Source: Epithemia pelagica (Eukaryota > Protista > Bacillariophyta). Taken from it: a DNA stretch of 64,000 nt. The notes under the pieces were generated by a model. It saw nothing but the letters and a program-made list of their open reading frames with translations. It had not been told where the DNA came from and did not search any database. The stretch lies in assembly GCA_946965045.2 (NCBI GenBank), contig OX337230.1, positions 3,348,001-3,412,000 of the forward strand, given 5' to 3'. The first letter of the stretch is position 1. Every line of letters begins with the position of its first letter. Position numbers and translations under genes: made by a program. Below, piece after piece: positions 3,953 through 23,420 of the stretch.

Positions 3953-4226
3953 GATGGTCCTTCTCTTGAGAATTTCTAAAGCCTTTGTGAGAAACTTCGA
4001 TACTGCAATAGCAACTGAATTTGCTGAAGAGCAACGACTGCAGTAATCACAAAACACTGTTGAGAGAGATCAATCACCACACACAATGGCAAATGCGAAC
4101 CAGAAAACACACGCAAACATCAGACAAACATGGTCTTTTGGTTGCGTCTGCTTTGAAACCAATTGTGACACATGCACCAACCGCCTTTCATTGCATTCCT
4201 ACCCACAAAGAATCATTCCAGAGGCG

Positions 4227-4267
4227 CACACACACACACACGCGCAGAAAACACACACACACACACA
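4227..4267. repeat. (CA)n microsatellite, two tracts
   Basis: cacacacacacacac and acacacacacacacaca seen directly. Confidence 0.9.
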
Positions 4268-6299
4268 GTAGTGACATTTGTCGACGCGTGAAGTACCCTC
4301 CAGCTCCCGTTTGTTCTTCACACTCGACATTCAAGTGTCACACTTGGTTTTGTTTGTTGTTTTTTCATGGTCTCACCTAATGGAATCAATGAATCTCTTG
4401 GTTGGTTAGTCGTCGTGAAATGGTTCGACAATCCGCTTTTTTGGCTTGGGGTGACAAAATGCGAATAATGCTCCTCAATTCGTCGTCTGCTCTAAAGACG
4501 GCGTCTTGCACTCGTGAAAAGTTGTTCTTCTGTTACGAACTCGGTTGCCCGCTGTCGCCCTTGAAACCGACAGAGACTCGTTTGTACAGGCGTTAAGCTT
4601 GCTGGTAATGGATAGAAGAAGGACCTTCCTTGTCTGTGTGTTCTTGAGTTTCGTCGCACTCTATTTGTAGATGGAGTATCTTGATTCGTGAGAGTCACGC
4701 ACTCTGGACGACGACGACAATGATGGATCAACACAATGCCGAAATTCCCAAAAGACTGATACGATGTACCTTATTGTATACGCGAGAGATTTGCTCTGCC
4801 CAAAGCAACAAAGGCCAATGACACGAAACTTTCAAACCCAAAGTCTTCTTCTGCCAACCCAACAGAAGCGGCAGCAAGTCTTCTACGGTGCAATCTACAG
4901 AGTTCCCACTCGTAGGACATGCCAATGGATCGAATGTTGACAGATTTCGGCGTCCAAATTCTCCAACGACGATCGACGGCTGGACGGGGCACTGGATGTG
5001 CGACTGAGAATTCTTAGTCCGGATTCTCAGAATCCAGAACTTTTTCCATCATGTTCTGTTTTCTGTTCCGAGTTCCGAGACCGAACGCTCCAACCGGAAA
5101 CCATCGACGTACCCACCCTTCTGATGGCTGATACACCCGCTTGATGTTCTTCGCGACAACTCGACATCAATGATTGATGTCGTGTGGATTCGCTCGTCGA
5201 TCCGTGATGTTCACTGTAGCGCTAAACTGTAAGACTATAATACGTTTGTGTACTGTTCGGGTCTGGCTCGCGCCACAGGAAATCAGAACCCTCGAAGTGT
5301 TGCACATCTGTTGTTCGGTGAGGGCAAATCCGACGTGTCTGTGAAGAAGCAGATTAATCAAAGGAAGAACGGCCGCGTGGGGACGCGTGTCCTACACCCA
5401 TGAGCGCCATCTGCTTCTGTTCATATAAAGATCTGAACTCGAGTGTCTTTGCGAACGACGGGGAGAGCGGCCATTGGATCTCGGTTTCCGGTTTCGATTA
5501 AGCCCAAGAGCGTTCTCAAAAGATCCGAAGCGGTTCGGGATCTTGGATTCGATTCGATTCTGGATCGATCTCAAGACGGCTGGTGATGGCGGCTGTCGAG
5601 GGGAGCGAAGGCCTGCTTCTCAAAACCATTGATGGCCTTGATTCAGAGGTGATTTGATGGGTGCCTTCGCACATCCTTGTCATGGACTGGGCCATTCTCA
5701 CTACGAATTTCTTCGTGTTTGCTCCAAATGGTTTCTCTGGAGAGTAGGAATAGAGAGAGCGAATCTTCTCGCAAGAGGTGATTGCATCCATTGACAGATG
5801 ATGGAGGATGATGGCACGAGTGAAGATATGACATCTGCCAGAACAAGGAACCACACAACTCAATACCCGGAACACACTTCTTTGTCTTCTCTCTCTCTTC
5901 TTTGCGTATCATGTAGGTAGATCCCTGTAGGCGAAAAAATGAATCTTGCCATAATCAACTTGACGCTCGACATCTCGCTCACTCCAAATCTCTCTCCAGT
6001 TGATTGGTCTCATAAAACAAGTTTCCAACCGTTTGCGAAACACTTCCAAACACACACTCACTACCAGTAACCTTCCTTTGGTGTCATCGTCCTTCCTATC
6101 CAGTGGAAACGAACCGACCCTTACGAACCGCTTCGGATAACCAAAATCATCTTCACTTTTTGAGTATCGCCCTCTCTCTCTCTTTCTCATCAAGCTCTTA
6201 CGTCGTCCCCAAGTGTCAAGCATTGGATTCCTCGCTTCCGTCTCTTCAAGAACCACACCCAAGTTTTTCGACCACCTACTACGATCATTTTTTTTGAAC

Positions 6300-6674
6300 A
6301 TGTTGGCCATTTGGAGTTCCACCTGCAGTCCTACCGCCACGACGACATCTTCGTCCAGCACCACCACCACTACGACCACCGACATGGCTCGATCCTTTCT
6401 TCGACGCCATACGACATCCGTCGCCACACCCCCGGCTGCCATGCCAACGACCTTGTTGGATCAACAAGAGACCAAGTGCTTGGCATCGCAACATTCCGAA
6501 AGTACATGGGAACCCTATGGCTTTGAGAAAAAAGATGTAAGTATCTCGGAACGTTTCGAAAAAGTCCCAATGTCATTCCCCCTGTTGAGAAGAACCATGA
6601 GTCTCACATATGCGCTTTTTTATTTTTTGTTGACAAAACAGTGTGGTTGGGGTGCCTGGTACCTTGTCCCCTAA
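6300..6674 (+). CDS. Small two-exon hypothetical protein (exons 6300-6536, 6642-6674)
   Basis: ATG at 6300, donor GAT|gtaagt at 6537 and acceptor aaaacag| at 6641 (105-nt intron). The spliced product ends ...WEPYGFEKKDCGWGAWYLVP*. Confidence 0.45.
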   Translation: MLAIWSSTCSPTATTTSSSSTTTTTTTDMARSFLRRHTTSVATPPAAMPTTLLDQQETKCLASQHSESTWEPYGFEKKDVSISERFEKVPMSFPLLRRTMSLTYALFYFLLTKQCGWGAWYLVP

Positions 6675-7783
6675 GAGCTCAAGACTCTTTTTTTTCTGCC
6701 ACTTTTCCTCATGATACATCACAGCACACGCACCTACGAAACCACAAAAACTATACATCATTTTCTCTAAATACCACACCACGAATAGACCACACTCCAT
6801 CCTTGGATTGCAGCCCGCTACTGCAACCAGCAACAACAACAAGATCTTGGAACGAAGGACCCGGAATCCAAACTACAAGCCAATCTCGACGGTCCTTGTT
6901 TCTTTTTTATTTGACCTACCACAAGTGACGTTCCCTTTGTCGACATGACCACTCTCAACAAGGGACTCTACGAAAGAAGTTTGTATGATCAACAGCATGG
7001 GTTCGAATCCCTGTCGCTTGAAACCAAAAACGAAACCAAACCAAAAAAAAAACACCAGAACCACAAGAACGACGGAACCTCCATATCCAATTATGTACTC
7101 CTGGCCCACCTTGTCGTCGTCAAGACGTGTGGAACCTCCCATTCTTAGTTAGCAATACAACTTGGTAAAACTCTAAATACCTACTTGTTCCGTCAATTGG
7201 TCCTTGTCAAAAAACCTATCAAAGATTTCTGCCGGATTGAACTTGCAGTTCCCATGAACAAATCTTTTTCTTTCTCTCTCTTCATACAAGAGCTGCCAAT
7301 GCAAACAAGAGGTTCTCATACCACCAGCATGTCATACCAAAATCAATCCAACAGAAACGTGTTTTCCGAACACTGGCAGCTGTCGCGAGCACTCCGCGTG
7401 TCGTTGTGGTGTTGGGAGTCCAACAACGAACGTCAAACAAGCCATTGTGTTCCTACAATCAATACAAACAACAGCCTGGATCGGTCATGCTTGTGAATCA
7501 TGCATGCCGATCCAGTCCCTGCTACTAAAATCATAAAGTGCCAACAACAAGAAGGGACATTTCTGGAATGAGAATCGGCACACGACGAGGTTGTCAAGGA
7601 TGTGAACTAGATAGAAAGAGAGAAGGGATCGTTTGTTCATGTTGTTTTTTCGTTTATCATCCTTTGGGTGTCGTCTGGAGGTACTGTTCATTGTGCGAGT
7701 TTCACTCCCTGTGTTCGTGTCCTTGGTTTGAATCTGCTGTTTTGTATAGCGGTAGCTTGATGACTCTTGTTGTCCATGCCTTG

Positions 7784-8437
7784 TTACCCATCGTCGTCGT
7801 CATTGTCGCCACACGCCGCCAAATTGTCGGCTTGGTTGACGACCTGCAACACTACATTCGGAAGCATTTGTAACCCAGTTGCAGCGGTAGCATTGAAGCA
7901 CTGATCCACAACCATTGGTGTTGCCGCCATGGCAACCATGCGTCGCATTGGATTCAATGTCGTTGTAGTGGTGGTGGTCGTGAGAGAACGGCATGTTGTT
8001 GTTGCATACGGGGAGGACACAGACTGTGGTCGGCCCAGCACGGATGAGGAGGAGCGGGTCACCATTGCGGAAGGGGAAGACCCTCCGGTAGAAGTTGTAG
8101 TAGAAACATGGGAAATGGTTCGGTTCAAGACAGCGTGGTTGTTGTTGTTGCTGTGGCCATGAGGAGTCGTCGTCGTGATCCTCCAACGAGGAGCAGCAGC
8201 AGCGGGATGGTTGGAACCAAGCTGGGGAGGTGGTTGTTGTGCAGCTCGACTTTGTGAAATCATCCTGGAGGGACTTGTCGTCGTCGTCAAACTCACGTGG
8301 TGGCTGATGCTTGGATCGAAGGAATGTCCCCGTCGGGCTCCTCTGGTCGTAGTATTAGTGGCGTGTTGGGAGGACGACTCTCTTCGAAGCACCGTTTCAA
8401 AGAGCCTTCGTCGTTGACCTGCCATGGACCGCAACAT
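7784..8437 (-). CDS. 'DG-tail' array member A (217 aa)
   Basis: Arg/Ser-rich N-terminus (MLRSMAGQRRRLFETVLRR), S/T-rich body, ends ACGDNDDDDG*. Confidence 0.65.
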   Translation of the reverse strand: MLRSMAGQRRRLFETVLRRESSSQHATNTTTRGARRGHSFDPSISHHVSLTTTTSPSRMISQSRAAQQPPPQLGSNHPAAAAPRWRITTTTPHGHSNNNNHAVLNRTISHVSTTTSTGGSSPSAMVTRSSSSVLGRPQSVSSPYATTTCRSLTTTTTTTTLNPMRRMVAMAATPMVVDQCFNATAATGLQMLPNVVLQVVNQADNLAACGDNDDDDG

Positions 8438-8630
8438 TCTGAATCGAAAAAATATTCACACAAGTCTTTTTTTACTTGAGAGAGGATGAATGAAAACAAA
8501 CAATCGATGATCCAATCTTTCGCGTTGGCTGGATCAATTGCTCATGGGCGAGAGGGAAAAGATATTCTGTGTGAAGAAAGATCTTCCGCAACCAGACTGG
8601 TCAGATCCCTAAAAAGTGTGGAAGTCAGAA

Positions 8631-8749
8631 GGAACGACCATACCACGATGACAGCACCGCTTCCCGTCTGCTCAGCGAAGTTAAGCATCGTCGGGCCCGG
8701 TTAGTACTACGGTGGGGGACCACGTTGGAATCCCGGGTGTTGTTCTTTT
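8631..8749 (+). rRNA. 5S: 5S rRNA gene
   Basis: About 119 nt. Helix I ends GGAACGAC/GTTGTTCT. Conserved eukaryotic 5S segments CCATACC, GAAGTTAAGC (box A), GGGCCCGGTTAGTACT, GGTGGGGGACC (box C) and GGAATCCCGGGTGTTG. TTTT Pol III terminator at the 3' end. Confidence 0.93.
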
Positions 8750-8884
8750 GCAGTTTTCAATAATCTCATTGTCCCAGTCATCGGTACTTTACTCCATAAC
8801 AGATCGAAATATTATGATATCCCTTACGATTACAACCTTCTATGCGAATAGATAATACATGGACTGAGATGTTGCCTCTATGTA

Positions 8885-9100
8885 CTACCCAAAGTCGTCA
8901 CCATTGCAATCGTACGAAAACAACGAAACAAACACAGGAATTTTACAACTAATGACATAACTGCCACTAACAATGTCGAACCTGGTGGTGTCAAGAATCT
9001 TAGCAATCCAAGAGTCGTTACAGTATTTGTTCAGATACTCCAAAATGAATTTTATTCCATTCTTGGCGAGACGGTAGCAATGTCCACATGGTCCACGACG
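8885..9100 (-). pseudogene. Possible degenerate DG-tail array member B
   Basis: ORF 8885..9292 ends YDCNGDDFG*, with the same strand and position pattern as the array. The body is not convincingly similar. Confidence 0.25.
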
Positions 9101-9197
9101 TTTTGGCGTTGCGGCATTGCGTGGTCCATGTGACATATCATGATGATAGTACTGTCCCCCTGCATGTTTTTGGTCATGTCCAATCCAGCGAGAGTCG

Positions 9198-9563
9198 TTA
9201 AACTCCGTCATCGTCTTCGCCGCCTTCTCCCAGATCCAACATGGTTCCACCATGCGTCCATTCCAACAAGGACGGGCAAGAAGATGAACCAAGCTGACTT
9301 GGGGGTGGTGTCATGGTATTGTACAAAGACGGAACTGGACTTTCGTTTTGGACCAACCCCATCCTTGAACCAGTATTCATTGCGAGCGGAGGTTGGACCT
9401 GGATTGGAATGGTCGTCCATGTAGAGCAAGTCCGAATACGAGAGGATCCTTGTTCTCCGACACTGGACGCGACGGGTCGAACCCGCGATTTGTTGTTGCT
9501 GTTGCATCGCCTCAGAACTGAGCGAGCCGCATTGTGGATGGGAAGATTCTGATAGAGTTGCAT
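9198..9563 (-). CDS. 'DG-tail' array member C (121 aa)
   Basis: First in-frame ATG at 9563 (MQLYQNLPIHNAARSVLRR); ends MLDLGEGGEDDDGV*. Confidence 0.65.
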   Translation of the reverse strand: MQLYQNLPIHNAARSVLRRCNSNNKSRVRPVASSVGEQGSSRIRTCSTWTTIPIQVQPPLAMNTGSRMGLVQNESPVPSLYNTMTPPPSQLGSSSCPSLLEWTHGGTMLDLGEGGEDDDGV

Positions 9564-10088
9564 TCTGGAGAAGAAAGGTAAGGAGATGTTCTTTGAAAGG
9601 GGCGGTGGTGTGTGTATCTTGTTGAAAATGTGCGGACGAAGCAAAACCTTTTTTGTGCGTCCCTAACGCGACCAAAACAAGGAAAAGTACCATCACGCAA
9701 TGAGGAAGGCACCATTCAATGAAGCTCCTATGTACGAAACTGAAAAGGACCATTCGTCCCTTGTCCTATACCGCAGAGAGATTCCTCGGAGGCCTTCCGA
9801 ACAAGGCAAAGAAGAGAGGAATTGAGCCTTGAAAGAGCTTCTGCGTCTCTGGAGATTCTCTGGTGCCCCTCATTTTTGTCCGACCAACGAAACGCTTCCC
9901 TATGAATCTTTGCTTTCAGATTCTGGTGAACGAGAAGAAACATCAATTCAATCGCTCCGTAACAAACGAGCCAGAAAAGCATGAGCGCTGACGAGTCACA
10001 GTCGAAGAAAAGAGTCCATCTGACCACGGCAATCATCATTCATTAAGCAGAAATGGTTTCTAGCAATCTTCTTCTTTGATTCTCTGAC

Positions 10089-10547
10089 TCATACCCCGTC
10101 ATCATCCTCACCCTCGCTTTCTTCTTCGGCGGGTAGTCTAGCACTGCTTTTATGCTGGAGATGCGATGTACTTGTCGTCACAGAAATGCTGCTCGGAGCC
10201 GTGGCCCTCGGGTCGTAAGGACCGACAGTTGTTGAGTTGGATTGAAATTGATCCGCAATGAAGGAATGTGGTGAACATCCAGCCAACGAAGATGAGCTCA
10301 GTCTTCTTGTGGTCGTGATGGAAGTGGTAGTTGGTGATCCGTTCCGTGCAGTTCGAGTCTTGCCAGTGAAAGACGACGAAAAGCCAGCCATAGTGGTATT
10401 GGTCATTGTCGACAATGTCGCATAATGATAGCTTCCAACTTCTTGTATAGATGACACAACGTTTCTTGTGCGTTGTGGTTTGTTCAACGACTGGCAAAGA
10501 GTAGCTGCCCAAAAGATACTGCGTCGAGAGTTTGCAGTGATGGACAT
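10089..10547 (-). CDS. 'DG-tail' array member D (152 aa)
   Basis: ATG at 10547 (MSITANSRRSIFWAAT); ends LPAEEESEGEDDDGV*. Confidence 0.65.
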   Translation of the reverse strand: MSITANSRRSIFWAATLCQSLNKPQRTRNVVSSIQEVGSYHYATLSTMTNTTMAGFSSSFTGKTRTARNGSPTTTSITTTRRLSSSSLAGCSPHSFIADQFQSNSTTVGPYDPRATAPSSISVTTSTSHLQHKSSARLPAEEESEGEDDDGV

Positions 10548-11399
10548 TGTATTATGGAAAAACACTGCACTTTGTCGAACCCAACCTCACAATCACTGTT
10601 CCTCTACGAAATCAGATTCCTTGAAGAGTGGATTCAATGCAAAACAAGCCAGATGCGAATGGTTGTAGGAGCACCCCGAGCTGTGATGGACGCGTTGCAG
10701 TTGCTGTTGTCCATTGGCGTGACATCAAACGCGTGGTGAGGAACGACGTCCAGCAACAGCGACTAGTGTGCGATTCCTGAAGTTCGATGAAGGTAGAGAC
10801 GCTAGCTGTTTGCATCATGTCATTCCTTTCCCCTCTCTCGTATGGGAGATGTTTCTGATACCTGTCAAGTCCACTAAGAACTAGAATATCCGACTAGGTA
10901 CAGCCCCGGAAAACCCTCCAACCTACTATGTGGTTATATCTGGGGATCTGAATTGTTGTCGGTTTGTGCATCTGTGTCTCACACTCTCGTCGAGTGGCAA
11001 TGTTGATAGTGTTTCCAAAAGAGCTGTCCGGACTGGATTGACCTCTGCAAAACAGAGTTCCATTCATAAACTTGTCAAGGACCATACCGTTCAAAGAAAA
11101 AAGTATTAATTAGCCTGGTGAGTTTTCAGGAGCGTTCAACACAAGTCGTTGCAACCCGACCGCGTGCGTAATCCATCAGGAAGGCAGGAGATCCATGAAA
11201 TGGGGGACAACAGTAGTACAAGGAGAAAGAGGTTAACTGTGAGTATACAAAATGGACCAACACCACAGACAAGAGTACGCGCTTTTGATCCCAAGGCACA
11301 TGTATCGAAACAGCTCCCAAAGGAGGACATTTTTTTATGCCGCTGATTGATATTGATTTGTCATGATTTTCCGTACCATGCATTGTGTGGCAGGCGAGG

Positions 11400-11894
11400 C
11401 TACGCACCATCATCATCACCTTCATCGTCCAACTCTCCAGAATCGAGACCATTGGCCATGGCGGATGGACGCAAGGTCAGTTTGGGAAGATTGCTCATGA
11501 CGCTACTGGCATCCAAGTAGTCACTAGCCATTTGGGCACATTGCGTGGACAACGCCGCCATTCCCAATCGGGTTGTAGTTCTCGATGGCAGCCGTGTCGT
11601 AAACAAAGTGTTGCTGGTTGTTGTTGTGCTGGTCGTCGTTGTCATGGACCGAGAGACGGAGGAGGCAGGGGGTGATGTCTGCGACGGTAGAAATCGGCAA
11701 GGAAGATTGGATTGTGGATGTAAGGACGACCGGATTGGAATCGACGTGATCATTCTACTTGTCGCTGTTCCGGATGACAATGACGGCATCACTGTCGTTG
11801 GTGTCGTCGTGCTACCGGCAGTCAGTCCTCGTCGTGTGGTTGGCAACAAGGAATTTGCGGCTCGCCGACTGCTACGTCCCATGGTAGAAAGCAT
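11400..11894 (-). CDS. 'DG-tail' array member E (164 aa)
   Basis: Starts MLSTMGRSSRRAANSLL; contains AALSTQCAQMASDYLD; ends GLDSGELDDEGDDDGA*. Confidence 0.75.
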   Translation of the reverse strand: MLSTMGRSSRRAANSLLPTTRRGLTAGSTTTPTTVMPSLSSGTATSRMITSIPIRSSLHPQSNLPCRFLPSQTSPPASSVSRSMTTTTSTTTTSNTLFTTRLPSRTTTRLGMAALSTQCAQMASDYLDASSVMSNLPKLTLRPSAMANGLDSGELDDEGDDDGA

Positions 11895-12479
11895 GATGAA
11901 TCGATTTCAAGCGAAGAAGAACTGCGACAAAATACAAGGTCAATGGGGTATTTGCCTCACTGCAAATGTTTGGTACCCGTATGGCAACGAAAAGAGAAAA
12001 GATTGGTCCTTCCTCCTCGGTTTCGTCTTTATGCCACCCAAAGATCTCTTTTGGCCGTTTCTGTGAGTGGTTGGGGACTATCTTTTGAAAGCGACCAATA
12101 TGCGATATGTAAAATATGGTGAAGAGCGTCGGGAATGGCTTTGTTTTGTCGATCTCTCGACCTCCTGATGGGCAAGTCATACTACTTGGCAGTTCCAATT
12201 TCCCTTCCGAATAAAAGGGATTCTATTTGAAAGTAAGATTATTGCTATGGCATCGTTGAACTGGTGTGCAATAGACTCGCACCATTCGGGAACTACATGT
12301 CCACGGGATAAGATCCCTATCAAGTAGAAAGCTCAACTGTAAATTCCCTGCCACGGCTTGGAAGTCGTCAACTGACTCAAAAGATCCATTCCAACGACAT
12401 TAACATGATGGATATGGCTGGTCTTAGGAGACAAATATGCGACAGACTCCATCCCAGAAGAAGAGAAGCAAAATGTCAA

Positions 12480-12550
12480 CCATGCACTGGGCATGCCAGC
12501 AATCTTCCTTCACCATGTACTGGGCACGCCAGCAATCTTCCTTCACCATG
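12480..12550. repeat. 33-bp tandem duplication (2 copies plus a 5-bp partial)
   Basis: ccatgcactgggcatgccagcaatcttccttca / ccatgtactgggcacgccagcaatcttccttca / ccatg, downstream of member F. Confidence 0.85.
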
Positions 12551-12664
12551 CCTAACATCACAGCAGTACTATCCGTAGGCCAGGAGAAACAGTGGATCGA
12601 TAAAACCATACGTGTACGTGGTCGACCGGTTTTCATATTTTCAATACAACGTACACCAGACCGG

Positions 12665-13201
12665 CTACCTTCCCTCCTCGTCGCTATCCTCCTCCATATC
12701 TCCCGCGTCCAGACCATTGTCCATGCCTGGACACCGTAACGTCACTTTCTGAATATTGTTTCGGACAGTGCTCAGGTCAAAGTAGTCACGAGCCATCTGG
12801 GCGCATTGTGTCGATAAAGCAGCCCTTCCTATACGGAATGTGCTCTTCATGCTCGATGATAATCTCAATGTCGAATGTATGTTGTTTGTGGTAGCAGATG
12901 CTGTCCCAGAATGACAATGTGATGACAACTGTGAAGAATTCAACTGAAGATGAAATCGACAAACAGACTTGCTGGATGAAGGCACCGACGACGTTGATCT
13001 GACCAACGAAGGCAGATGGCTGCTTTTTCTGTTTATTCTTGTTGATGAGACTGTTACTTTCCTCGCCAAGAGCAATGTATTTGGAACCGATGCCGTCGCC
13101 GCCGTTCTCGTAGGCGGCCTTGTCGGTGGTGCCGTCGCCGTGGGTGGTCGAAATAACGAGCAGGCGGCACGTCGACCGCTTCTTGTCGTGTTTGACAACA
13201 T
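12665..13201 (-). CDS. 'DG-tail' array member F (178 aa)
   Basis: Starts MLSNTTRSGRRAACSLF; contains AALSTQCAQMARDYFD (shared with E); ends GLDAGDMEEDSDEEGR*. Confidence 0.75.
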   Translation of the reverse strand: MLSNTTRSGRRAACSLFRPPTATAPPTRPPTRTAATASVPNTLLLARKVTVSSTRINRKSSHLPSLVRSTSSVPSSSKSVCRFHLQLNSSQLSSHCHSGTASATTNNIHSTLRLSSSMKSTFRIGRAALSTQCAQMARDYFDLSTVRNNIQKVTLRCPGMDNGLDAGDMEEDSDEEGR

Positions 13202-13594
13202 TCTTCTGATTTCAAAACCGTGTTGCAGGGAAGCGTATTGTCTCTGAATTAAAGCATCTATCCTTCTGGAGGCTATGATTACGGATCACGTCGTCGTGCG
13301 TGTTCCAATGATGTGTGGTTTTGTGGTCGGTGTCATACTTTTAAAAGCGACCACAAAAGATAAAGTGACGAGTGACCCACAAAGGCTCCAATTGCATTGC
13401 CATCGTAACCCATGTCCTTTGTTTTGTGTGTAAAAGGTTCCACAAGACCATCACGGTTTTCTCCCAAAAAACAGACATCGATGAGTTTTACATAATAATG
13501 AGAGTGTTATCGGTTACAAGTTACAAACCAACTTTCGAAGTCGTGTTCCTGTTTAGTCTTTAGTACATGGACGCTTCTCAGCGTCCACTACGTA

Positions 13595-14197
13595 CTACCG
13601 TCCATCCTCATCATCTTCGTCCTCCATGTCTAAACCATCTCCAACACAAAATACCAATGATGAGGTTGGAAGAACTGTGGTTCCTTCTATCAACATTGGA
13701 TTGGAGGCTGATGGGAGCACGGAGCAGGAACTTGAGCCAACAGCCAACGACATTTGTCGATGACACACATTTCCCACAAGAAATGAGGTACTGGATTCTA
13801 CCATCACATCTGAGGACGCTTGATGAGTACGTTTCCTTGAGGAATACGGAAAAGAACGAGCTAACGACGATGATGAAACCATGGTGGTCGACCTTCCTTC
13901 ATTCGACACTGCAATATGTAAGTTCGAACCAATGGTCGCTTTCGATGTATGATTCTTTTGTTTGATTCCGTTGAGAAGATTTCTTGTTGCATCAATTGTC
14001 CCAACAGAGAACACCCCACGAGCCACCGTGGTTTCATGTGACGAAACCGAGCCGTACATTGTTCTTGTGGACAGGGACCCCATGACAGCTTTATTTCTAT
14101 TGATTGCACTCTGCGTTTTCGATGTTTGGCCTTGAAAGGCTTGAAGGGGACGAGTGAGCCCTTGCATGGCATTGCGGCCGTTCCATGAAACAACCAT
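13595..14197 (-). CDS. 'DG-tail' array member G (200 aa)
   Basis: Probable start accATGG at 14197 (MVVSWNGRNA), shared with H and I; ends VGDGLDMEDEDDEDGR*. Confidence 0.75.
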   Translation of the reverse strand: MVVSWNGRNAMQGLTRPLQAFQGQTSKTQSAINRNKAVMGSLSTRTMYGSVSSHETTVARGVFSVGTIDATRNLLNGIKQKNHTSKATIGSNLHIAVSNEGRSTTMVSSSSLARSFPYSSRKRTHQASSDVMVESSTSFLVGNVCHRQMSLAVGSSSCSVLPSASNPMLIEGTTVLPTSSLVFCVGDGLDMEDEDDEDGR

Positions 14198-14522
14198 GGT
14201 GGACTTACGCCGCGTATTTTGTTCTCGATCTGATGCCATGGCGCAGAAATCGAAATCTTTGAGTCTGTCTGTCACCAGTCCATCCATCGTTTTATGGAGA
14301 GCGATGACTGTCTTACACGCGTAACCATTTGGAGTGACGAAACAAATTCGTCTCTCTGAGAGCAACGATGGTTGCTTCTAAAGACCTCCAAATGCACGAA
14401 GATATTAACACTGTGCTTAGAAGACACTGGTTTCTATGGCAGCTCCTGGTTCAGGATACATCCATTCGCCCAGTCCCTCAATCTTCTTAGTAGACGCCGA
14501 AACTTATCGGCTTAAACTCGTG

Positions 14523-15164
14523 CTATCTTCCATCCTCGTCATCTTCTTCATCCATATCCAAACCATCTCCAACTATAAATGTCACTGAAGAGCTAGGAAG
14601 ATCTGTTGAACCTTGTACCACCACTGGAATGGTGGCTGGATATGTAGTCGGTGCCGGGGCCGGACACAGGGATGACAAGGTCACTCCACTCGACATTCGT
14701 CGATGTTGCATTGCACTCATTTTCCCAGCATTGTGAAGAAAACAATCTTCATTCGAAGCTGAGGTTCTCTGTAAAACCGTTCTTCTTGACGAGCATGATG
14801 ACGAACAGTGATCGCGTTGAGAAGATGGTGGAGACAACGTCATCCCTCCTTCATCCGACACTCCATTTGACAGGCTATGTCCACTCATAGAATGTATCAT
14901 CTGAGAACCTCGTGTGAATCCCTTGCCTCGAGTGTGTGTTGTATCTCTTGTATCTCGAAAGAGCATCGCATGAGGTTGAGCGTCGGAGTGAAGCGAAGCC
15001 AGTGCGTCCCGCGTTGTGGAGAAACAGCGAGTGTCAACTCGCTTTCGGTTCAATGCTTTTTGGGAATTCACTGATGTTTTCGAAGGACGAAAAGGGCCAC
15101 CACAGGTACGGGCCAACCTTTGCCCGGCACCACGGCTAAGGTTACTCGTCATTGAGACCACCAT
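14523..15164 (-). CDS. 'DG-tail' array member H (213 aa)
   Basis: Starts MVVSMTSNLSRGAGQRLAR; ends VGDGLDMDEEDDEDGR*. Confidence 0.75.
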   Translation of the reverse strand: MVVSMTSNLSRGAGQRLARTCGGPFRPSKTSVNSQKALNRKRVDTRCFSTTRDALASLHSDAQPHAMLFRDTRDTTHTRGKGFTRGSQMIHSMSGHSLSNGVSDEGGMTLSPPSSQRDHCSSSCSSRRTVLQRTSASNEDCFLHNAGKMSAMQHRRMSSGVTLSSLCPAPAPTTYPATIPVVVQGSTDLPSSSVTFIVGDGLDMDEEDDEDGR

Positions 15165-15524
15165 GGTCCGAATTCCGAATGTGATAGGAGTAGATATGAA
15201 ATATGAATATGAATAAGCGGACGATCTTTGCGTCTGTCTGTCACTGCGGCGAGATAGAGACTATGTGCTCCCATAGAAATTCATCCCCATAGCTAATGGG
15301 GTGTGGTTTTGCTGTGACAAAGATAGGGAAGACGATAGACGATAGGAGTAGAAGTTATGAACTGCACTATGTTCCAACACAGACAACGGGTCCCTGAACA
15401 ACAGAATATGAATACCTGAGGGACGTAGCGCAACTGCGGCCTGGATCTAAATCATCCGGTACTCCGAAACTGGGTATCTACAGAGGACAACACTCGACGG
15501 ACGTATAAATACGTCCAACCAATG

Positions 15525-16130
15525 CTAGTTTCCATCCTCATCATCTTCTCCTTCAATATCCAGACTATCTCCGACACCAGCTGGTGTTGAAGAGGAGCTT
15601 GGAAGAATTGAGGCGACCTGTGACACTACTGGATTGACGTCTGGATGGGAAGTCGGTGCAGACCCTTGAGGCATGGAAGGTGATGATCCCAAACAGGAAA
15701 TTTGCCGACTTGTCGTACACCTCTCGAGGGGATGAGAGGGTAGCATGGAATCCATCATGATGCCTGTGGAGACCTGGTTGTTCCTTCTTCTTGTCGAGCA
15801 CGAAGAAAAGCTTGCATGCTGCGAAGATGAAGAAGCCATGTTTGTCAATCTTCCTTCAATTGATATTCCAAAACTTGATCTGTTTCCACCAATGGTGTGA
15901 TTTGTGGTAATTTGATCCCTTTCCATGATGCGATTTCTGGTTGTATCAATGTTGACAGCTGTAATGGGCAGTCCATTTGGTTTGACGTTGGAGTGATGCG
16001 ACGCGAGCGCATACATTCTTGCCGACATAGATCCAACAACATTTCTTTTCCTTTCAAAGGCACTAGAGTGACCTCCATTGGGACAGGCCAACTTTTGAAC
16101 GGCTCTTCGGCCGCTCCAAGAAACCACCAT
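15525..16130 (-). CDS. 'DG-tail' array member I (201 aa)
   Basis: Probable start at 16130 (MVVSWSGRRAVQKL); ends VGDSLDIEGEDDEDGN*. Confidence 0.75.
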   Translation of the reverse strand: MVVSWSGRRAVQKLACPNGGHSSAFERKRNVVGSMSARMYALASHHSNVKPNGLPITAVNIDTTRNRIMERDQITTNHTIGGNRSSFGISIEGRLTNMASSSSQHASFSSCSTRRRNNQVSTGIMMDSMLPSHPLERCTTSRQISCLGSSPSMPQGSAPTSHPDVNPVVSQVASILPSSSSTPAGVGDSLDIEGEDDEDGN

Positions 16131-16836
16131 GGCGCATCCGAAAAATGTCTCCAGAGAACAAAACATCCCATCCATCGAAATCTTCTAGTCTGTCTGTCTG
16201 CCGCTTCGGCTAGCAGGCCTATCTGCCGTGGCAGCTTCGTCGTATCTAGGAGTACTCCTATCATCAAAAAGGTCTTCGAGCTTCGAGTTGCAGTCCTCTA
16301 TGGGAGAAAGTGTGTTAAGAAAAATCTCTCCCAACAACGAATGTGTATCTTTCGTCTTTCAACACGTATCAAGGCGACCATGAACCAAAGAACAAACAAT
16401 TGTTCTTACTTTTTGGCTAGATCGTCTCGTCCGACTACCAAACCAAGTCACGATGTCAGTGATAGCGAGAAGACGGACCAAGAGCCGAGTATTGCACAAA
16501 TATGAGAAAGCTCTAATGATAGGTATATCTAGAACGAGCATGAAGCTGTATGCGTCACAATGAGCTTAATCCTGTTGGCCTATGTACTGTTCAACCGATT
16601 GGTCTTGGTGACTCAACCTTTCATCTTTGCTAGCGATCTGACAAGATGAAAACACCACAAAGAATATATCCACAAGTCACAAAGAAGTAAAGTGTGTGAG
16701 TCGTTGTCTTGCAAGTTCTTTTCACGGTTGAGGAAACATCTTGACAGCACACTTCACCGCATTGCTTTTTCCCCGGGAACGCATCGCAGTGTGATCCTGT
16801 CATTTACGATAGAGCCATACTTACGTACAGATTCTG

Positions 16837-17337
16837 CTACATACCATCATCGTCCTCTTCTCCATCGCCATCCGCAGCGCAGTCCAGTGCATGTGGTCGG
16901 AGAAGGTGCAGAATCTTGGGCAAACTTGGTGTGTAGGTTGGTTCATGACAATCCCATGCCACTTGGGCGGTATGAGCAATCATTCCAATGGTATTCTTGC
17001 TGTACTGCCGTCGTTGTTGTTGCTGTTGTTGATTTTGCTGAAACAGTCCCCGACGACTTGCGTTGTGGTTGTTGTTGGACGAAAGACTGTGCGTCGTTCG
17101 GCATGTACTTGTCGACGTTGTAGATGTGGACGGTACGGACTGTGTTCGCGTCGTCGGCGCCAGCAGGGGGCACCGAATCGAATTTGTTCTGACTTGACCT
17201 ACATGAAGGTGACTTTGGCCAGTCGTCTTCAATGACGATGATAGTGACGCCGAATTCTTTGTTCCTGTTCGGGCGGACAGCGATTTCGACCAACACGAGA
17301 AGGCCATTCTCTGGCATCGACCAGCGGCGGACGCCAT
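16837..17337 (-). CDS. 'DG-tail' array member J (166 aa)
   Basis: Starts MASAAGRCQRMAFSCWSKSLSAR; 'TAQVAWD' resembles E/F 'CAQMA.D'; ends ALDCAADGDGEEDDDGM*. Confidence 0.7.
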   Translation of the reverse strand: MASAAGRCQRMAFSCWSKSLSARTGTKNSASLSSSLKTTGQSHLHVGQVRTNSIRCPLLAPTTRTQSVPSTSTTSTSTCRTTHSLSSNNNHNASRRGLFQQNQQQQQQRRQYSKNTIGMIAHTAQVAWDCHEPTYTPSLPKILHLLRPHALDCAADGDGEEDDDGM

Positions 17338-17548
17338 GCTTCACGCCAAACACCAGCAACGCAACAGACGGGGACAGTCCACCAAGACAAAGATGGCGTA
17401 GGGGGTTGTCAGAACGGACGGTGGCGATCCAAAGAAGGCAGCGCCATTGATGGACGGATGCGGCAGCGTCTGGCCGTCGCTCATATTCCGCCAGAAATTC
17501 GCGATCAATCCGCGATGGATCTTTTTAGCCAACCATCACACACAAATA

Positions 17549-18727
17549 ATGGAGGTGGCCCTATCGACATCATCAGAGTATGAGAATGAGATGCTATCGT
17601 TGCAGCAACTGTTCGGGGACATTGAGAGTGACAGTGACGATGCCAGTGAAAGAGGATTGGTTATCACTGCGGAAACGGAGCCAAATCACAGTGCCGTCTC
17701 AAACTCAACGACTACAAGCGATCAAGAATCCAATGATTTTCCGGTACCCTCCTATTACATGAAAGCGATTCTGGCCGGTCTCTACGAAATCCCATCCGAT
17801 CATATTCTCCGTCATCAAACTGGTTGGGGACGCAAAATTCGATATGATCACGTTTGTCGATTGGCGTCATCCTTTCCTTGCATCGCGATATGGACCGTTG
17901 GTGACGAGAACTCGTCGTCGACAACAAGTACGACATTGCGGATTGATTTACATCAAGAAATTCTCTGTCGGCACCAAAACTTTGACCCCGGCACAGAATT
18001 GTCTCAGGAAATGGCAGAGTTTGCCATTTACCGTGCCCGGATCAGTGACGTTACCTCATTGAACCAGCGACTGACTCGCATAGCCATTCAAGATGAACAG
18101 CAACAGCCTTCCTCCTTGAATGTGAGCAATGCTGGTGGAGGTTGGCACGGACCACCGCATTTCTTTAATTCGTCTTGTGAAGATGATGCTCAATTCACAC
18201 TATGGACACTCGTCAAGCAGGTGATACAGGCGATTGAAGCACGACAAGAACCTGTCCATGAATTGAACTTGTCTCAAGAAAATGTGGAGGCATGGATAAA
18301 TATATCTCGTCATGAAGCATGGAATCGTCTTCATACGCATCAAGGAAGTGCTTGGAGCGGTGTTTACTACGTCCAGCGTCCATCTTCCTCTACAGCAACG
18401 AGTGGCCGGTTGGTTCTGAAACCAACGGCGCATCCTGTGGAAGACGCCCAATATTCCTTATCGCTGCGTGAACAAGAACGGCTTCGTAACGTGCAGTCAT
18501 GCCTGGATGGTAGTTCGAAGGGCACTGTTCCCATGCATAAGGACACGGCCGCGTTTTTGGATATTGAACCGGAACCGGGAGATATGATTGTGTTTCCTAG
18601 CTGGTTGCATCATTGTGTGCTACCATCCATATGCCGTGGTGGAGGAACGACGGAACAAGATGGTAATGAGGTAAAGGCACGAATATCGATCGCTTTCAAC
18701 ATCAACTGGAAAGAACAAGATTCTTAA
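17549..18727 (+). CDS. 2OG-Fe(II) oxygenase (2OG-FeII_Oxy_5-like)
   Basis: ORF 17447..18727. Motifs AWINIS...WNRLHTH (HxH), WSGVYYV, PGDMIVFPSWLHHCV and RISIAFNI are typical of this double-stranded beta-helix family. Confidence 0.85.
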   Translation: MEVALSTSSEYENEMLSLQQLFGDIESDSDDASERGLVITAETEPNHSAVSNSTTTSDQESNDFPVPSYYMKAILAGLYEIPSDHILRHQTGWGRKIRYDHVCRLASSFPCIAIWTVGDENSSSTTSTTLRIDLHQEILCRHQNFDPGTELSQEMAEFAIYRARISDVTSLNQRLTRIAIQDEQQQPSSLNVSNAGGGWHGPPHFFNSSCEDDAQFTLWTLVKQVIQAIEARQEPVHELNLSQENVEAWINISRHEAWNRLHTHQGSAWSGVYYVQRPSSSTATSGRLVLKPTAHPVEDAQYSLSLREQERLRNVQSCLDGSSKGTVPMHKDTAAFLDIEPEPGDMIVFPSWLHHCVLPSICRGGGTTEQDGNEVKARISIAFNINWKEQDS

Positions 18728-19480
18728 ATTGATGTATGTTGGGATAAGTGGATGCTGATCAAAGCCATTCGTGAACAACTGCTTTGATTGTCGCCATCGT
18801 AAGTTGATACGACGAAATTCATTGTAAGCAAACATTGCATAGTCAAGATCTATGGAATCGAAGTGTGGTATGTTTACCGACACAGTACTGTCGAAGTCCC
18901 GAAATGATGGAAACACGAAACAAGATACCCTTGACATTTCCCTTGTTTGGGGTCGAATCCCTTTCGCGGTACGGATCTTTGCGAAACCAGACGTGTCACG
19001 TCTCACTCTCGTCATGGACTTTAGGCCTGAGCAGCCATTGCTTTTGTCGACGTTGAGATTGTGTGTGTGTGTTCGCATCGAGGGACGAAATCCAAAAAGG
19101 GTCGTCGTCGTCCTAGTCTGGATTTTATTGTAGATTTTACCATGGGCAATTTTGATCATATTGTACGCGTACTTAGGAGAGCCAGTGGAATGCCGATTAT
19201 TGCCAGGTGGAGTTGACGCGATCAAAGCGCGGGGTCCCGTTTGGGGATCGCCGTGACTCCAACGTAGAAAATATACTGCTCTCTACACAATCATTTATAT
19301 AGTGTATGTGAGTGTATGTAATTGTTGCCTTGATTGGATGATGCTCCCCCAACATGGCAGGCGGCTAGAATAAAGATTTCGACTCTTAGAAATTTTATCG
19401 GGTAACACTTTCGCGCACGCGCTTCTCCAGATTCCTCGAAGTACTTCTTATTCTATAGTCTTTCCTCATTTGTTCGTGTG

Positions 19481-19558
19481 GTCCAAGTGAGCGTCGAGAA
19501 TCGCTGTCTTTGCGTGACTGTCGTCCAAGTGAGCGTGGAGAATCGCTATCTTTGCGTG
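19481..19558. repeat. 42-bp-period tandem duplication upstream of the TIR gene
   Basis: gtccaagtgagcgtcgagaatcgctgtctttgcgtg (19481) and gtccaagtgagcgtggagaatcgctatctttgcgtg (19523). Confidence 0.85.
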
Positions 19559-19617
19559 TGACTTTATAAGAGCAGTCTGTGTCAGTAGGCCAAGGGCCCT
19601 AGTGATGATGAAAGAGA

Positions 19618-20802
19618 TTGGATGAGGTGCAATCTTACACTCTCCAAGCCATTGTCATAAAATCAAACTGTACGTCGACAATGACTATCATCCGGAACTT
19701 TCGAGATGAATACGAAAGGAAAGACTTTCAGGACGGTCTCCATCGCATTTACGCTGACGTTGAAAAAGAAGCTGGTTTAGAAGCGTGGGCTGTCAAGGTA
19801 CTGCTCACACATCGAAATGACCCACAGAACGCCCATGTTGCGAACATTCTCACTGATATAAATAAGTGCATCTCGTTGTTGTGTGGTATTGTGAGAACAT
19901 GGGAACATGCTTTGGATCCTGATTTCATTGAGCAAGAAATCCACGAAATCTTTGAACCGTGGCGATTGAAAAGATTGATGGTAGTATGTTGTGCGATGAA
20001 CCAAGTACGGTTGCACCGCAATATGTGTGTTCCCATCTGTTGCTTTTGCAACAGGAAAAGTTTTAGAACGTTGGTTCCCAATGGTCGAGAAGTATCTCAG
20101 TGTGAGGAACAGGATCCACTGACCACCACATGGTACAATCCAATCGAAACGGCCGACGTTCAGCACTGTCTCCTCCGACTGCTTAGAACAAAGCGTTTTT
20201 GTCTTCTAGAGGACAAGAATCTGGAGCGCTGGTTCCCACACATAACAGAACGACAAACTCAAGGAGATCTCCAAAACGCAATGCCTCTCAGTGCTTCTGC
20301 GAATGTAGGTTCGCCTAGACGATCCCAAAGTATCCAGCGCATTTCAAGTATTCTTAGTGTACGGTGGAGCCGACACTTTCCCAAGGTGAAAGACAATCTG
20401 GTCTTTCTGTGCCACACAGGTGCCAACAAGGAACTTGTTCGTGAGGTCAATCGCCGCTTGAGACTGAATCTTGGCGTACCCACGTTTTTCGATGAGCAAG
20501 CAGTAGAACCGGGAAACACCATCTCCGAAAAAGTGTATCAAGGTATTGTGAATGCAAGTGTGGTGGTCTTCTTTTTCAGTCACCCGTTCTTTAACAAGAA
20601 GTGGCCACCAGCGGAGCTTCAAGAGTTTCTCGACCGTCGCAACCAAGGCGACTGCATCTCTTTCCTTCCAATCGTGATTGACATGACCCGTGAAGAATTT
20701 GAAGCCAAGGCACCTCGTGCTCCTCCATCTTTTGTCGCCATGTCAAAGGTGAGGACGTTTTCCTTGTGGAGAAAGTCGTCCGTTGGGTGGAGCAAACCTT
20801 GA
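19618..20802 (+). CDS. TIR-domain (TIR_2-like) protein
   Basis: C-terminal region reads VFLCHTGANKELVREV...LGVPTFFDE..VEPGNTISEKVYQGIVNASVVVFFFSHPFFNKKWPPAELQEF...FLPIVID. First ATG is at 19681. A possible intron starts at AAG|gtgagg near 20750, so the 3' end is uncertain. Confidence 0.8.
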   Translation: MDEVQSYTLQAIVIKSNCTSTMTIIRNFRDEYERKDFQDGLHRIYADVEKEAGLEAWAVKVLLTHRNDPQNAHVANILTDINKCISLLCGIVRTWEHALDPDFIEQEIHEIFEPWRLKRLMVVCCAMNQVRLHRNMCVPICCFCNRKSFRTLVPNGREVSQCEEQDPLTTTWYNPIETADVQHCLLRLLRTKRFCLLEDKNLERWFPHITERQTQGDLQNAMPLSASANVGSPRRSQSIQRISSILSVRWSRHFPKVKDNLVFLCHTGANKELVREVNRRLRLNLGVPTFFDEQAVEPGNTISEKVYQGIVNASVVVFFFSHPFFNKKWPPAELQEFLDRRNQGDCISFLPIVIDMTREEFEAKAPRAPPSFVAMSKVRTFSLWRKSSVGWSKP

Positions 20803-22040
20803 AAAAGTAGCAGACGTGTCACTTGTTACCAGCCTTGAAACGCTCTCAAGAAAGCAGTAACAAAGAGTGATTTGTCATCCTTGACTATGCCTTCGTCATA
20901 CCATTGTTTTGATGTCCTGAATGTGGATTGAAAACATGACCGTCCTTCTTCATAGCTTCCTCGTTTCGCAACACTGCGCTGAAGGGAAAAGTCAGTTCAT
21001 ACAGGCTTCTGCATAAGTACAATTCATATGGAGATACCAGAGCAACACACCCTCCGACTCATTCAATAGAATGAATCTCATTTAGTAGTATGCTTGTTTC
21101 ATGTTACAAAGGAGGGAGCCTTTGTCTACTCGCTTTTCAGAATGGCACTCAGTCTGGGATGGTAGACGGGACCAAAATTCCATTTTTTTGGCGGGATCAA
21201 AGGCTTCCGTACAACCTATCTCTTTTAACAGTTTCATGTCAATAATAATTTAAGAACATAAACATCTCCTCCACGCTCTGGTTGTTTCCGTTTGCCTTTG
21301 GTCTACTATCGGGAAAAAAGTTACCTACTCCTAATTAAAGAGAAATCGATGTTGTCTTCGCACGGCATTCCCGTGGTTTCCATTGACATTTGACATATAG
21401 TAACACAAGACCTGTGTCGTATGATTGAGATCTTTACCTGGGGAAATGGCGCATTTCTTGTTTCACCTGTTTCTGGATGCCCAACCAGCCTTGTTTTATC
21501 GATTGGATTTTTTTCTTCTTCTACGGTCCGTCTTGATTGCTACCATACGGTGGTCCAGAATCTTCCAACTTTCTAGGTAGAATTACATTCCATCCATAAT
21601 GTCCAATTTCGTGTCAAAAACCACCCACGTGACTGTCTACCAAGGTAGTTGGTCGATTCCCATGGCTGACCCGAAGATCATCACATGTCACAATGATCTC
21701 TGTACCCTGTCTTTTGTCCGCATGATTTGAACATTTGTCTAACTAATAGGATTGTCGCTACATCTATGCATGTTTTGAATCGAACGTGATGTCGCTCGCT
21801 CCAGCCAATGGGTGGCGCGTTGGGTCGATCGGATCTTTTTGTTCTAGTTCCGAGTCTAGTTTTATTTTCATGGAGCGATACTGCAACTCGGTTGTCGATT
21901 GGAAAAGCTCCGCTCCGGAAAGCCGTATTGTAGGATCCACACACCCACATTCGGCATTTGGAGGATCGTTCCACCCCTCATAGTAATGATGGCTTTCTCT
22001 TGTGTTGTTGTTGTTTTTCTGGATTGCTTGCATGCCAGTG

Positions 22041-22457
22041 TTATGCACCATCGTCATCCTCGTCGTCTCCCAATTCGTCCAGGGCGGTTCCGAGAATGGT
22101 CCAATCCACGAGCCGCGGTGGTGGTGATGATGTACCAACACGACTGTCGTCGTGGAACGTGTAAGGAGGCGACGACGACAGGTGGGATCCACAGAACGAC
22201 GATTGTCCAAGAATATTCGTATTCGTTGAAACGGATCGAGTTGTTGTTGCGGTACGTGAAATGGTAGGAGTGTCTGCTGCTGTCGTACTTATCCAACTGG
22301 TCAGCAGAGACCGACGACTCTGTCGCAGCAACGGTCCGTCGAATGGGCGTGTGACTGGAGTTGTTGCTGGTTTTCCAGTCGAGGATCGCACGGCCGACAG
22401 GGCAGGACGACAGGTCCGGACCAGGAGACGAGGAGCAGCGTTGGATACCAGAGACAT
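22041..22457 (-). CDS. 'DG-tail' family outlier K (138 aa)
   Basis: Presequence-like start MSLVSNAAPRLLVRTCRPALSAVRSS; ends ALDELGDDEDDDGA*. Confidence 0.7.
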   Translation of the reverse strand: MSLVSNAAPRLLVRTCRPALSAVRSSTGKPATTPVTRPFDGPLLRQSRRSLLTSWISTTAADTPTISRTATTTRSVSTNTNILGQSSFCGSHLSSSPPYTFHDDSRVGTSSPPPRLVDWTILGTALDELGDDEDDDGA

Positions 22458-23420
22458 CTTATTCTACGATTGTAGTGCGGCGGAAGGTTCTTGGGCCATT
22501 CATTGTGTGGTGGTGGGGTTGGGTTGTTGGGTTTCTAGGATGGATCCTTACAGGGGATGTGGATCCGATGCGACCGCCGAACGCACGCCTGGCTGGATCA
22601 CGAGTACCGATTCTATGGCATGGAGAGTACCATACTTTTTACTTAAGGAAATTGGTGGAGTATACCAGCGCGCGACTGAAAGACATAAGGAGGCACGCCG
22701 GCATTTCCGTTGCGGACGAAAAAGGCATGCCGAGAGCGAGCGTCGGCAGTCCATTCCGGAGTGCGTGGAGAGATGGGGCATGGGGTGTGATTTCTGCAAA
22801 CCGCAGTGTAAATTATGGGCTTGGGCAAGAGGACATCGGTTCTTGTTGTGGTTGTCGGATCACCTCTCTCTTGGCATTGACGTTGTGTTGTTGGCCTCTT
22901 TATATACTCGTTTTGGAACCTCTGGTCTCTGTGTACAGTGGTGACAACAAACCCAAACTTGGAACGAGATTCCTCAATCGTGGTGGAAGAGCGACATATC
23001 GCGCACCGTTTGTCTTTGGATCGAGTCTTGGATTGTGGAAAGGGTGTGTGGTTTCGAGAAACCCATCTCTCTGTATACGTTTTTGGGGTGTGTGTTGGGT
23101 TTGGATTCGTGGAAGCGTAGAATCTACAAGCGAGTTTCGTTCCTTGCCATTGGATTCCTATTGTACCAAGGCCTTTGGCAACAACACATACACAACAAGA
23201 TTATCGAGAGCTGCACTCGCGACGAATTGGTTGGATCATTGAATTGCTCTGGTCCACAAAGGAAACAAGCTCCAATCCTTTTCCTTCCTCCAGTGATTCT
23301 GAGAACAGTGGACGCTTTTGAAGCACATTCGGACGTTTGGATCACCCATTGCTATTGCGCGTTCTTGGCTAGTACTTGCACAACTTTTTGGCGTAGAGTC
23401 TTTGACACATTATCATCATC

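Follow-up and report, generated by a model that had tools for sequence, protein, structure and literature searches.

The analysed window, a stretch of 64,000 nucleotides from the nuclear genome of the diatom Epithemia pelagica (GCA_946965045.2, contig OX337230.1, positions 3,348,001–3,412,000), contains a tandem array of ten intronless open reading frames (ORFs), here named m1 to m10, all located on the minus strand within positions 7784–22457 and encoding proteins of 121–217 amino acids that end in a short acidic motif. From m1 to m9 the spacing from stop codon to stop codon is 0.89–1.41 kb, and m10 lies another 5.2 kb beyond, with two plus-strand genes, encoding a 2OG-Fe(II) oxygenase (17450–18727) and a TIR protein (19618–20802), separating it from m9. 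The first member, m1 (7784–8437), encodes 217 residues and ends in ACGDNDDDDG, with glycine as the last residue. It is followed by m2 (9198–9563; 121 residues from the first ATG, beginning with MQLYQNLPIHNAARSVLRR and ending in MLDLGEGGEDDDGV) and m3 (10089–10547; 152 residues from the ATG, beginning with MSITANSRRSIFW and ending in EEESEGEDDDGV). The paralogues m4 (11400–11894; 164 residues, ending in GLDSGELDDEGDDDGA) and m5 (12665–13201; 178 residues, ending in GLDAGDMEEDSDEEGR) come next, then m6 (13595–14197; 200 residues from an ATG opening the sequence MVVSWNGRNAM, ending in VGDGLDMEDEDDEDGR), m7 (14523–15164; 213 residues, ending in VGDGLDMDEEDDEDGR) and m8 (15525–16130; 201 residues from an ATG opening the sequence MVVSWSGRRAV, ending in VGDSLDIEGEDDEDGN). 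The last two members are m9 (16837–17337; 166 residues, ending in ALDCAADGDGEEDDDGM) and m10 (22041–22457; 138 residues, ending in ALDELGDDEDDDGA). These lengths use the first ATG consistent within each subfamily, and internal ATG codons are the likely starts of m2 (9563), m3 (10547), m6 (14197) and probably m8 (16130).

The feature common to all ten proteins is the exact C-terminus. When the six reading frames of the window were searched for the pattern [DE][DE][DE]G.?-stop, 11 occurrences were found compared to 0.18 (maximum 2) in 50 shuffles, and ten of them were the array members, all on the minus strand and within 15 kb. Similarly, at least six Asp or Glu residues within the last 12 positions were seen in only 11 of the 961 stop-delimited segments of at least 40 amino acids in the six frames, nine of which were array members. 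The endings found in the array are DDDGV, DDDGA, DEEGR, DEDGR, DEDGN, DDDGM and DDDDG, meaning that the glycine is followed by a single terminal Val, Ala, Arg, Asn or Met in nine members and is itself the terminal residue in m1. Upstream of the acidic run, an L-P-x-x-x-(L/V) patch is often located 15–25 residues from the end, followed by G-x-L-D; the LD-x element that the original prediction, made from the DNA letters alone, had included in the motif is present in eight of the ten members and missing from m1 and m3. The tails differ sharply in composition from the bodies, which contain 23–38% Ser+Thr, 8–13% Arg+Lys and 1–6% Asp+Glu and have a net charge of +6 to +19, while the last 15 residues carry 6–9 acidic residues. 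The tail codons are mixed, with GAT, GAC, GAA and GAG used for the acidic residues, GGG, GGA and GGT for the glycine and TAA, TAG and TGA as stops. The ten minus-strand ORFs, their endings, glycine codons and stops are thus all as the original prediction had described them. A search for tandem repeats in the tails with TRF yielded only a weak 9-bp row of three units in m7 and no significant array.

Several known C-terminal and linear motifs were compared to the tail and rejected. No member ends in -E-E-V-D, as expected of an Hsp70/Hsp90-type TPR-clamp ligand (EEVD-COOH). Substrates of CRL2-KLHDC ligases end in glycine, and a C-degron of this type would apply to m1 only, the other nine members carrying one extra residue. 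None of the readings as a SUMO-interacting motif (SIM), a clathrin box, a PDZ class III ligand, a KDEL-type signal or an amidation site (G-R) fits all or most members, and the LC3-interacting region/Atg8-interacting motif (LIR/AIM) reading has a basis in m10 alone (D-W-T-I-L). The reading of the G-x-stop codons as a splice donor was likewise discarded, as the sequence does not fit all or most members. A further possibility is that the tail constitutes a Ca2+ half-site of the DxDxDG type, perhaps completed by a partner or by dimerisation, and the presence of Asp or Glu at positions 3 and 5 in all ten members, with the conserved glycine as position 6, agrees with such a site. Position 1, however, varies along the array (N, G, G, E, D, E, E, E, E and D, with Gly in m2 and m3), the chain stops at position 7 (6 in m1) and so offers neither the position-12 Glu ligand nor an exiting helix, and no EF-hand or other Pfam match was obtained; we therefore regard Ca2+ binding of this kind as highly unlikely.

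Evidence for selection on the array came from a second copy of the locus. A word-indexed protein search with m5 returned a single match of 96% identity (P0001), encoded on ctg1286l of ENA ERZ21939226 (hereafter L001), which is colinear with positions 3564–23178 of the window at 87–96% identity. The window's own haplotype is also contained in ERZ21939226 (ctg1314l). Four public runs of the same organism, X1 to X4, cover the region, of which X1–X3 have the even coverage of DNA, and both forms of the locus are found at near-equal depth in X1 and X2. The organism is thus a heterozygous diploid with L001 as its second haplotype, on which all ten ORFs are open: m1 is identical on the two haplotigs, the m2 allele has two 3-nt indels, the m3 allele is 7% diverged with the last 8 residues unchanged, the m7 allele is 7% diverged with a 9-nt and a 3-nt indel, the m9 allele is open, and the m10 allele has six in-frame indels (3, 3, 21, 6, 18 and 3 nt) and retains the final GEDDDGA. 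Between the two haplotypes, the indel density is 1.16/kb inside the ORFs and six-fold higher, 6.8/kb, between the genes. The sizes of all six ORF indels (3, 3, 3, 3, 3 and 9 nt) are multiples of three, as are ten of ten when the whole of m10 is included (adding sizes of 21, 6 and 18 nt), compared to 22 of 79 (28%) of the intergenic indels. A DNA trinucleotide or low-complexity repeat artefact was rejected based on these exclusively in-frame indels, the mixed codons and the lack of a tandem array in the tails.

The substitutions between the haplotypes indicate weak purifying selection. For the family as a whole, 120.5 non-synonymous and 67.5 synonymous differences were counted, corresponding to proportions per site (pN and pS) of 0.029 and 0.049 and a ratio of 0.59, which departs from a neutral 3:1 split of sites (chi-square P ~5e-4). 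The pN/pS values of the domain-bearing neighbours were 0.30 (2OG-Fe(II) oxygenase) and 0.41 (TIR protein), and those of m3 and m6 about 1 or more (~1.5 for m3, from few sites). The constraint is unevenly distributed, as the last 6 codons show no non-synonymous difference against 4.5 expected (Poisson P ~0.011) along with 2 synonymous ones, and the first 15 codons have a pN of 0.012 compared to ~0.030 for the genes overall. The family had earlier been called rapidly diversifying, a description that has to be toned down, as the allelic pN/pS of 0.59 reflects weak purifying rather than positive selection. The claim that the peptide, rather than a repeat in the DNA, is the target of selection is borne out by the varied tail codons, by the reading frame kept between the haplotypes and by the unchanged last 6 residues.

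Such weak overall constraint, with values around neutrality in m3 and m6, would also be expected if the ORFs were young transcribed proto-genes or decaying duplicates devoid of function, with the tail as a remnant of recent ancestry, and the lack of a homologue in the databases searched and the low depth of several members in X4 (both described below) fit this as well. It is difficult to reconcile with the persistence of the tail, with synonymous variation, on bodies that have diverged beyond recognition, and with the in-frame nature of every ORF indel, the six-fold lower indel density and the intactness of all ten ORFs on both haplotypes, and we consider it quite improbable.

The divergence between the window (3600–23200) and L001 forms a fine-scale mosaic, being ~0% over 3600–6400 and most of m1 (8000–8400), 5–7% across m2–m3, the 3' side of m5, m7 and m10, and ~1% across m6, m8 and m9, a pattern suggesting that very old haplotypes have recombined or undergone gene conversion. 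In addition, a 901-bp presence/absence polymorphism was found in the m4–m5 spacer (window 12436/12438; L001 10766–11666), with its joint present in X1–X3; the insert matches nothing else in the window and contains no acid-tailed ORF.

The fourth run, X4, consists of 40 Mb of contigs from 2024; its kind is not recorded, but it behaves like a transcriptome and is presumed to be RNA. Over the m4–m9 stretch, its depth was 4.6–46 within the ORFs, with the maximum of 46 at m9, compared to zero or near zero in the spacers at 12180–12379, 13380–13579 and 16180–16779. The X4 contigs correspond to single genes with short untranslated regions (UTRs), covering positions 11435–11896, 12438–13278, 13860–14209, 14511–15114, 15355–16081 and 16935–17360. 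Of the sampled words from the m1–m3 stretch, about half of which is ORF, 34% are contained in X4. It is thus probable that the ten genes are transcribed. X4 also informed the choice of start codons: m6 was taken to begin at 14197, giving 200 rather than 256 residues, because a 2-nt indel breaks the upstream part of its ORF on the other haplotig, and the depth upstream of this start drops to 1.3. For m8, an alternative start at 16175 would give 216 residues, and the start at 16130 is probably to be favoured because the X4 depth is 0 from 16180 onward.

The same contigs bear on whether the apparent C-termini are true protein ends or whether the ORFs are exons of larger spliced genes, as could be imagined from the GT dinucleotide found within the last three codons of eight of the ten members, e.g. 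GGTATGTAG in m9 and GGGGTATGA in m3. However, contigs of X4 continue without a break past the stop codons of m5, m7 and m8 and on into 3' UTRs, no splice joints were reported over m4–m9, m7 and m8 lack a GT at this position, and the spacers hold no further conserved ORF, all of which makes larger spliced genes extremely unlikely.

Some further observations concern the expression of the locus. An environmental RNA-seq data set labelled as subsurface metagenome (X5) contained 8% of the sampled words of positions 7700–10650, which suggests that this organism, or one nearly identical to it, may occur in nature and transcribe part of this region there. The probable 3' UTR of m5 includes, at 12479–12551, a tandem repeat with a 33-bp unit (2.2 copies, 92% match). 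Furthermore, m6, m7 and m8 share an upstream element, GACAGACAGAC-N-(C/T)AAAGAT, about 50–80 nt before the ATG (around positions 14270, 15240 and 16200), and no promoter motif common to all ten genes was found above the level of shuffles.

Outside the C-terminus, the similarity between the members is limited to subfamilies. In pairwise BLASTP comparisons, significant matches were found between m4 and m5 (E 2e-25), among m6, m7 and m8 (E 3e-8 to 7e-22) and between m2 and m10 (E 3e-5), the latter confined to the last 34 residues (50% identity), and m1, m3 and m9 had no significant match to any other member. Leave-one-out profile hidden Markov models (HMMs), built with and without the tail, did not recover m1 and m3, recovered m4 and m9 barely and did not unite the subfamilies, and common descent of m1, m3 and m9 is therefore argued from architecture and position. 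After trimming of the last 15 residues, almost every member was lost by these models. A weak additional feature shared by the proteins is an R-R-A-x-x-x-L-like block near residue 10. The members most similar to each other are direct neighbours (m4–m5 and m6–m7–m8), a pattern that tandem duplication and subsequent rapid divergence of disordered sequence would produce. The earlier description of proteins sharing only their tail is thus essentially right across the subfamilies and holds less well within m4–m5, m6–m7–m8 and m2–m10, where the similarity is significant, and both BLASTP and the leave-one-out HMMs agree with the view that the bodies have become too divergent to be aligned. Complete disorder is predicted for the proteins, as had been proposed: AlphaFold2 modelling with the family alignment gave a mean predicted local distance difference test score (pLDDT) of 51, a predicted template modelling score (pTM) of 0.12 and no secondary structure, the m4 model being disordered.

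Searches for relatives found the family at its own locus only. When all ten members were compared to Pfam, nothing was found below E 0.04 and none came near a gathering score; a sequence profile search of the PDB gave no matches at E values up to 1; and the best scores in the ESM Atlas (0.73 and 0.80, searched with m7 and m5) were in the range reached by shuffled proteins. When 1.84 billion representative proteins, the parent collection of which carries MMETSP and EukProt source tags, were searched exhaustively (hmmsearch) with a family profile of 13 rows, nine matches were obtained, all nine from the array's own locus on either haplotig, including the C-terminal 43 residues of m1 (P0008). Nothing could be confirmed on JGI metagenome contigs with the patterns LD[MI][DE][EDG]EDD and ALSTQCAQ / MA[RS]DY[FL]D, the C-terminal 44 residues of m10 gave no match when searched, and nothing relevant was found in the literature on an acidic-tail or presequence family in diatoms. 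The closest foreign relatives of the embedded 2OG-Fe(II) oxygenase are only 39–43% identical, indicating that no close sequenced relative of the organism is present in these collections, and the loci of two of them (P0011 and P0014) contain no acid-tailed ORFs. The orphan status of the array is partly due to this gap, for which reason the depth of its conservation cannot be judged, and as a tail of 10–15 residues is too short to reach significance in databases of this size, relatives sharing only the tail may exist. The Pfam, PDB, ESM Atlas and profile searches, all of them without an outside match, are in line with the statement in the original prediction that no named family is recognisable. 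The array belongs to no described family, and what sets it apart is a sharp, exactly C-terminal motif across otherwise unalignable paralogues. Taken together, m1 to m10 very probably represent a real, selected, orphan gene family. The designation as a system, on the other hand, is not justified for what is one gene family at one locus.

Mitochondrial presequences are N-terminal stretches of 15–40 residues that are rich in Arg/Lys and hydroxylated residues, devoid of acidic residues and able to form a basic amphipathic helix, and the N-termini of the array proteins are similar in several respects. The first 30 residues contain 3–6 Arg/Lys, and acidic residues are absent from eight of the ten members, with one in m8 and two in m1. 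In a hydrophobic-moment calculation, which is a crude test and not a trained predictor, the highest 11-residue helical moment (100 degrees) was located within the first 25 residues in all ten members; its value of 0.50–0.80 was equalled or exceeded by 0–1.6% of the windows elsewhere in the same protein in every case and was only marginal when compared to shuffles of the same N-terminus. The body resembles a presequence in composition just as closely, and the N-terminus cannot be told apart from it on that basis alone, but the top-ranking moment and the reduced pN over the first 15 codons together speak for a leader with a function of its own, set off from a body of similar composition. The mitochondrial targeting put forward in the original prediction thus has heuristic support only, from the composition, the moment in ten of ten members and the constrained first 15 codons. 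A signal peptide or a bipartite, ASAFAP-type plastid leader was rejected, since the first 30 residues contain no hydrophobic core, which argues against secretion and the bipartite diatom plastid route, and Arg is spread through the leader.

Acidic C-terminal tails are also known to act in autoinhibition, as exemplified by HMGB1 and SSB, and the array proteins could accordingly be basic disordered proteins of the cytosol or nucleus that are not imported, with a tail that folds back on the body, mimics a polyanion or nucleic acid, or drives charge-patterned condensation. The opposite charges of body and tail and the complete predicted disorder are compatible with such a role, as is a body that resembles a presequence just as much as the N-terminus does. 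Pure charge would, however, leave the invariant glycine at position -2 and the fixed distance from D-G to the terminus unexplained, as well as an amphipathic leader that is more constrained than the body, and we find this alternative unlikely. We lean instead, with modest confidence, towards disordered proteins that form a species-restricted tandem family, are probably imported into mitochondria and would dock via their acidic D-G-x end.

Across the array, selection holds the reading frame and two short terminal modules, and the middle drifts in sequence and length. The first module is the N-terminal basic amphipathic leader of ~20–25 residues, with few or no acidic residues and a recurring R-R-A-x-x-x-L-hydrophobic element, most likely serving as an organelle import signal and probably as a mitochondrial presequence. 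The second is the exact C-terminus, comprising the frequent small hydrophobic patch (LPxxxL/V), G-x-L-D, the acidic run and the invariant D-G-x-COOH, most likely a short linear motif by which the free acidic C-terminus docks on a common partner or sub-compartment, and the disordered basic body may be a flexible tether or a second interaction surface. The combination of a constrained frame, leader and C-terminus with a drifting middle fits a disordered protein working through short linear motifs, and an invariant glycine at a fixed distance from the carboxylate, preceded by D/E-D-D/E-D, points to stereospecific recognition and not mere negative charge. As a bolder suggestion, in our estimation doubtful, the acidic [DE]-D-[DE]-D-G-x-COOH end might represent a previously unknown, exactly C-terminal targeting or docking signal. 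By analogy with the Rubisco-binding motif in the pyrenoid, it would bring a diversifying set of imported disordered proteins to one partner or sub-compartment, such as a mitochondrial nucleoid or condensate, or an import or quality-control receptor.

Several points weigh against the import-and-docking interpretation. The family is found in one organism only, leaving deep conservation of the motif unsupported, and the homology of m1, m3 and m9 to the other members is statistically unsupported beyond the tail. The tail constraint derives from few sites, with 0 changes against 4.5 expected, m3 evolves at about the neutral rate, and the whole body has a presequence-like composition. Furthermore, X4 is only presumed to be RNA, its contigs are unstranded and it covers most members at low depth.

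The closest parallel among described systems is found in Chlamydomonas, where pyrenoid proteins that are not otherwise related carry, at their exact C-termini, a Rubisco-binding motif that suffices for targeting (10.1101/2020.08.16.252858). In both cases a short, exactly C-terminal motif, [D/N]W[R/K]xx[L/I/V/A] in Chlamydomonas, is carried by otherwise unrelated and largely disordered proteins, and for the pyrenoid motif the free carboxylate matters and the motif alone directs the proteins to a common partner or compartment (10.1101/2020.08.16.252858), a role that can be extended to the array by analogy only. The pyrenoid motif is basic and aromatic, in contrast to the acidic D-G-x of the array, and the pyrenoid proteins are found in a green-alga plastid and are not encoded in tandem, whereas the array proteins lack a diatom plastid signal. 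A second parallel is the C-terminus of bacterial SSB (SSB-Ct, ending in DDDIPF), where a nine-residue acidic tip on a disordered linker recruits at least 17 partners (PMC7145534). The combination of a disordered linker and an Asp-rich free C-terminal tip is common to SSB and the array, and the SSB tip is a docking site that is also able to fold back on the basic part of the protein. The array proteins differ from SSB in having no OB fold and in ending in G-x (x being V, A, R, N or M) instead of the hydrophobic I-P-F, and no homology exists between the two. The likeness to mitochondrial matrix presequences lies in the Arg-rich, nearly acid-free N-terminus, which is the most amphipathic segment of the array proteins; the term presequence denotes a property rather than a family, and the array proteins show this amino-acid bias along their remaining length as well. 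Tandem arrays of lineage-specific orphan genes for disordered proteins are familiar in diatoms, and a genome study of Seminavis robusta reportedly dealt with tandem duplicates and species-specific genes. The present array resembles these in its tandem duplication, fast divergence, lack of outside homologues and predicted disorder, and differs by its fixed, exactly C-terminal motif and leader-like N-terminus.

Should the tail prove to be a genuine signal for docking or targeting, it would define a new class of short linear motif in diatoms, the organelle cell biology of which is little explored, and the ten natural linker variants on one constant motif would provide an experimental handle. If it is not, the array is one more species-specific family without an assigned role. 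The locus is moreover a clean natural case in which disordered proteins, once duplicated, have lost all alignable similarity and selection preserves only their two ends, and it can serve to examine how orphan genes arise and how far homology detection reaches.

Of the genes surrounding the array, the 2OG-Fe(II) oxygenase is of the PF13759/TIGR02466 type, and the TIR protein has its TIR domain at the C-terminus; both genes differ between the haplotypes. In the m1–m2 spacer, a full-length 5S rRNA gene stands alone on the opposite strand (8630–8748, plus strand; Rfam RF00001, 103 bits, E 5e-22). An ORF at 38952–40700 on the minus strand, 16 kb away from the array, has an M14 zinc carboxypeptidase domain; enzymes that trim acidic C-terminal tails are found among the M14 peptidases. 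The gene content of the window also includes a PAP-fibrillin.

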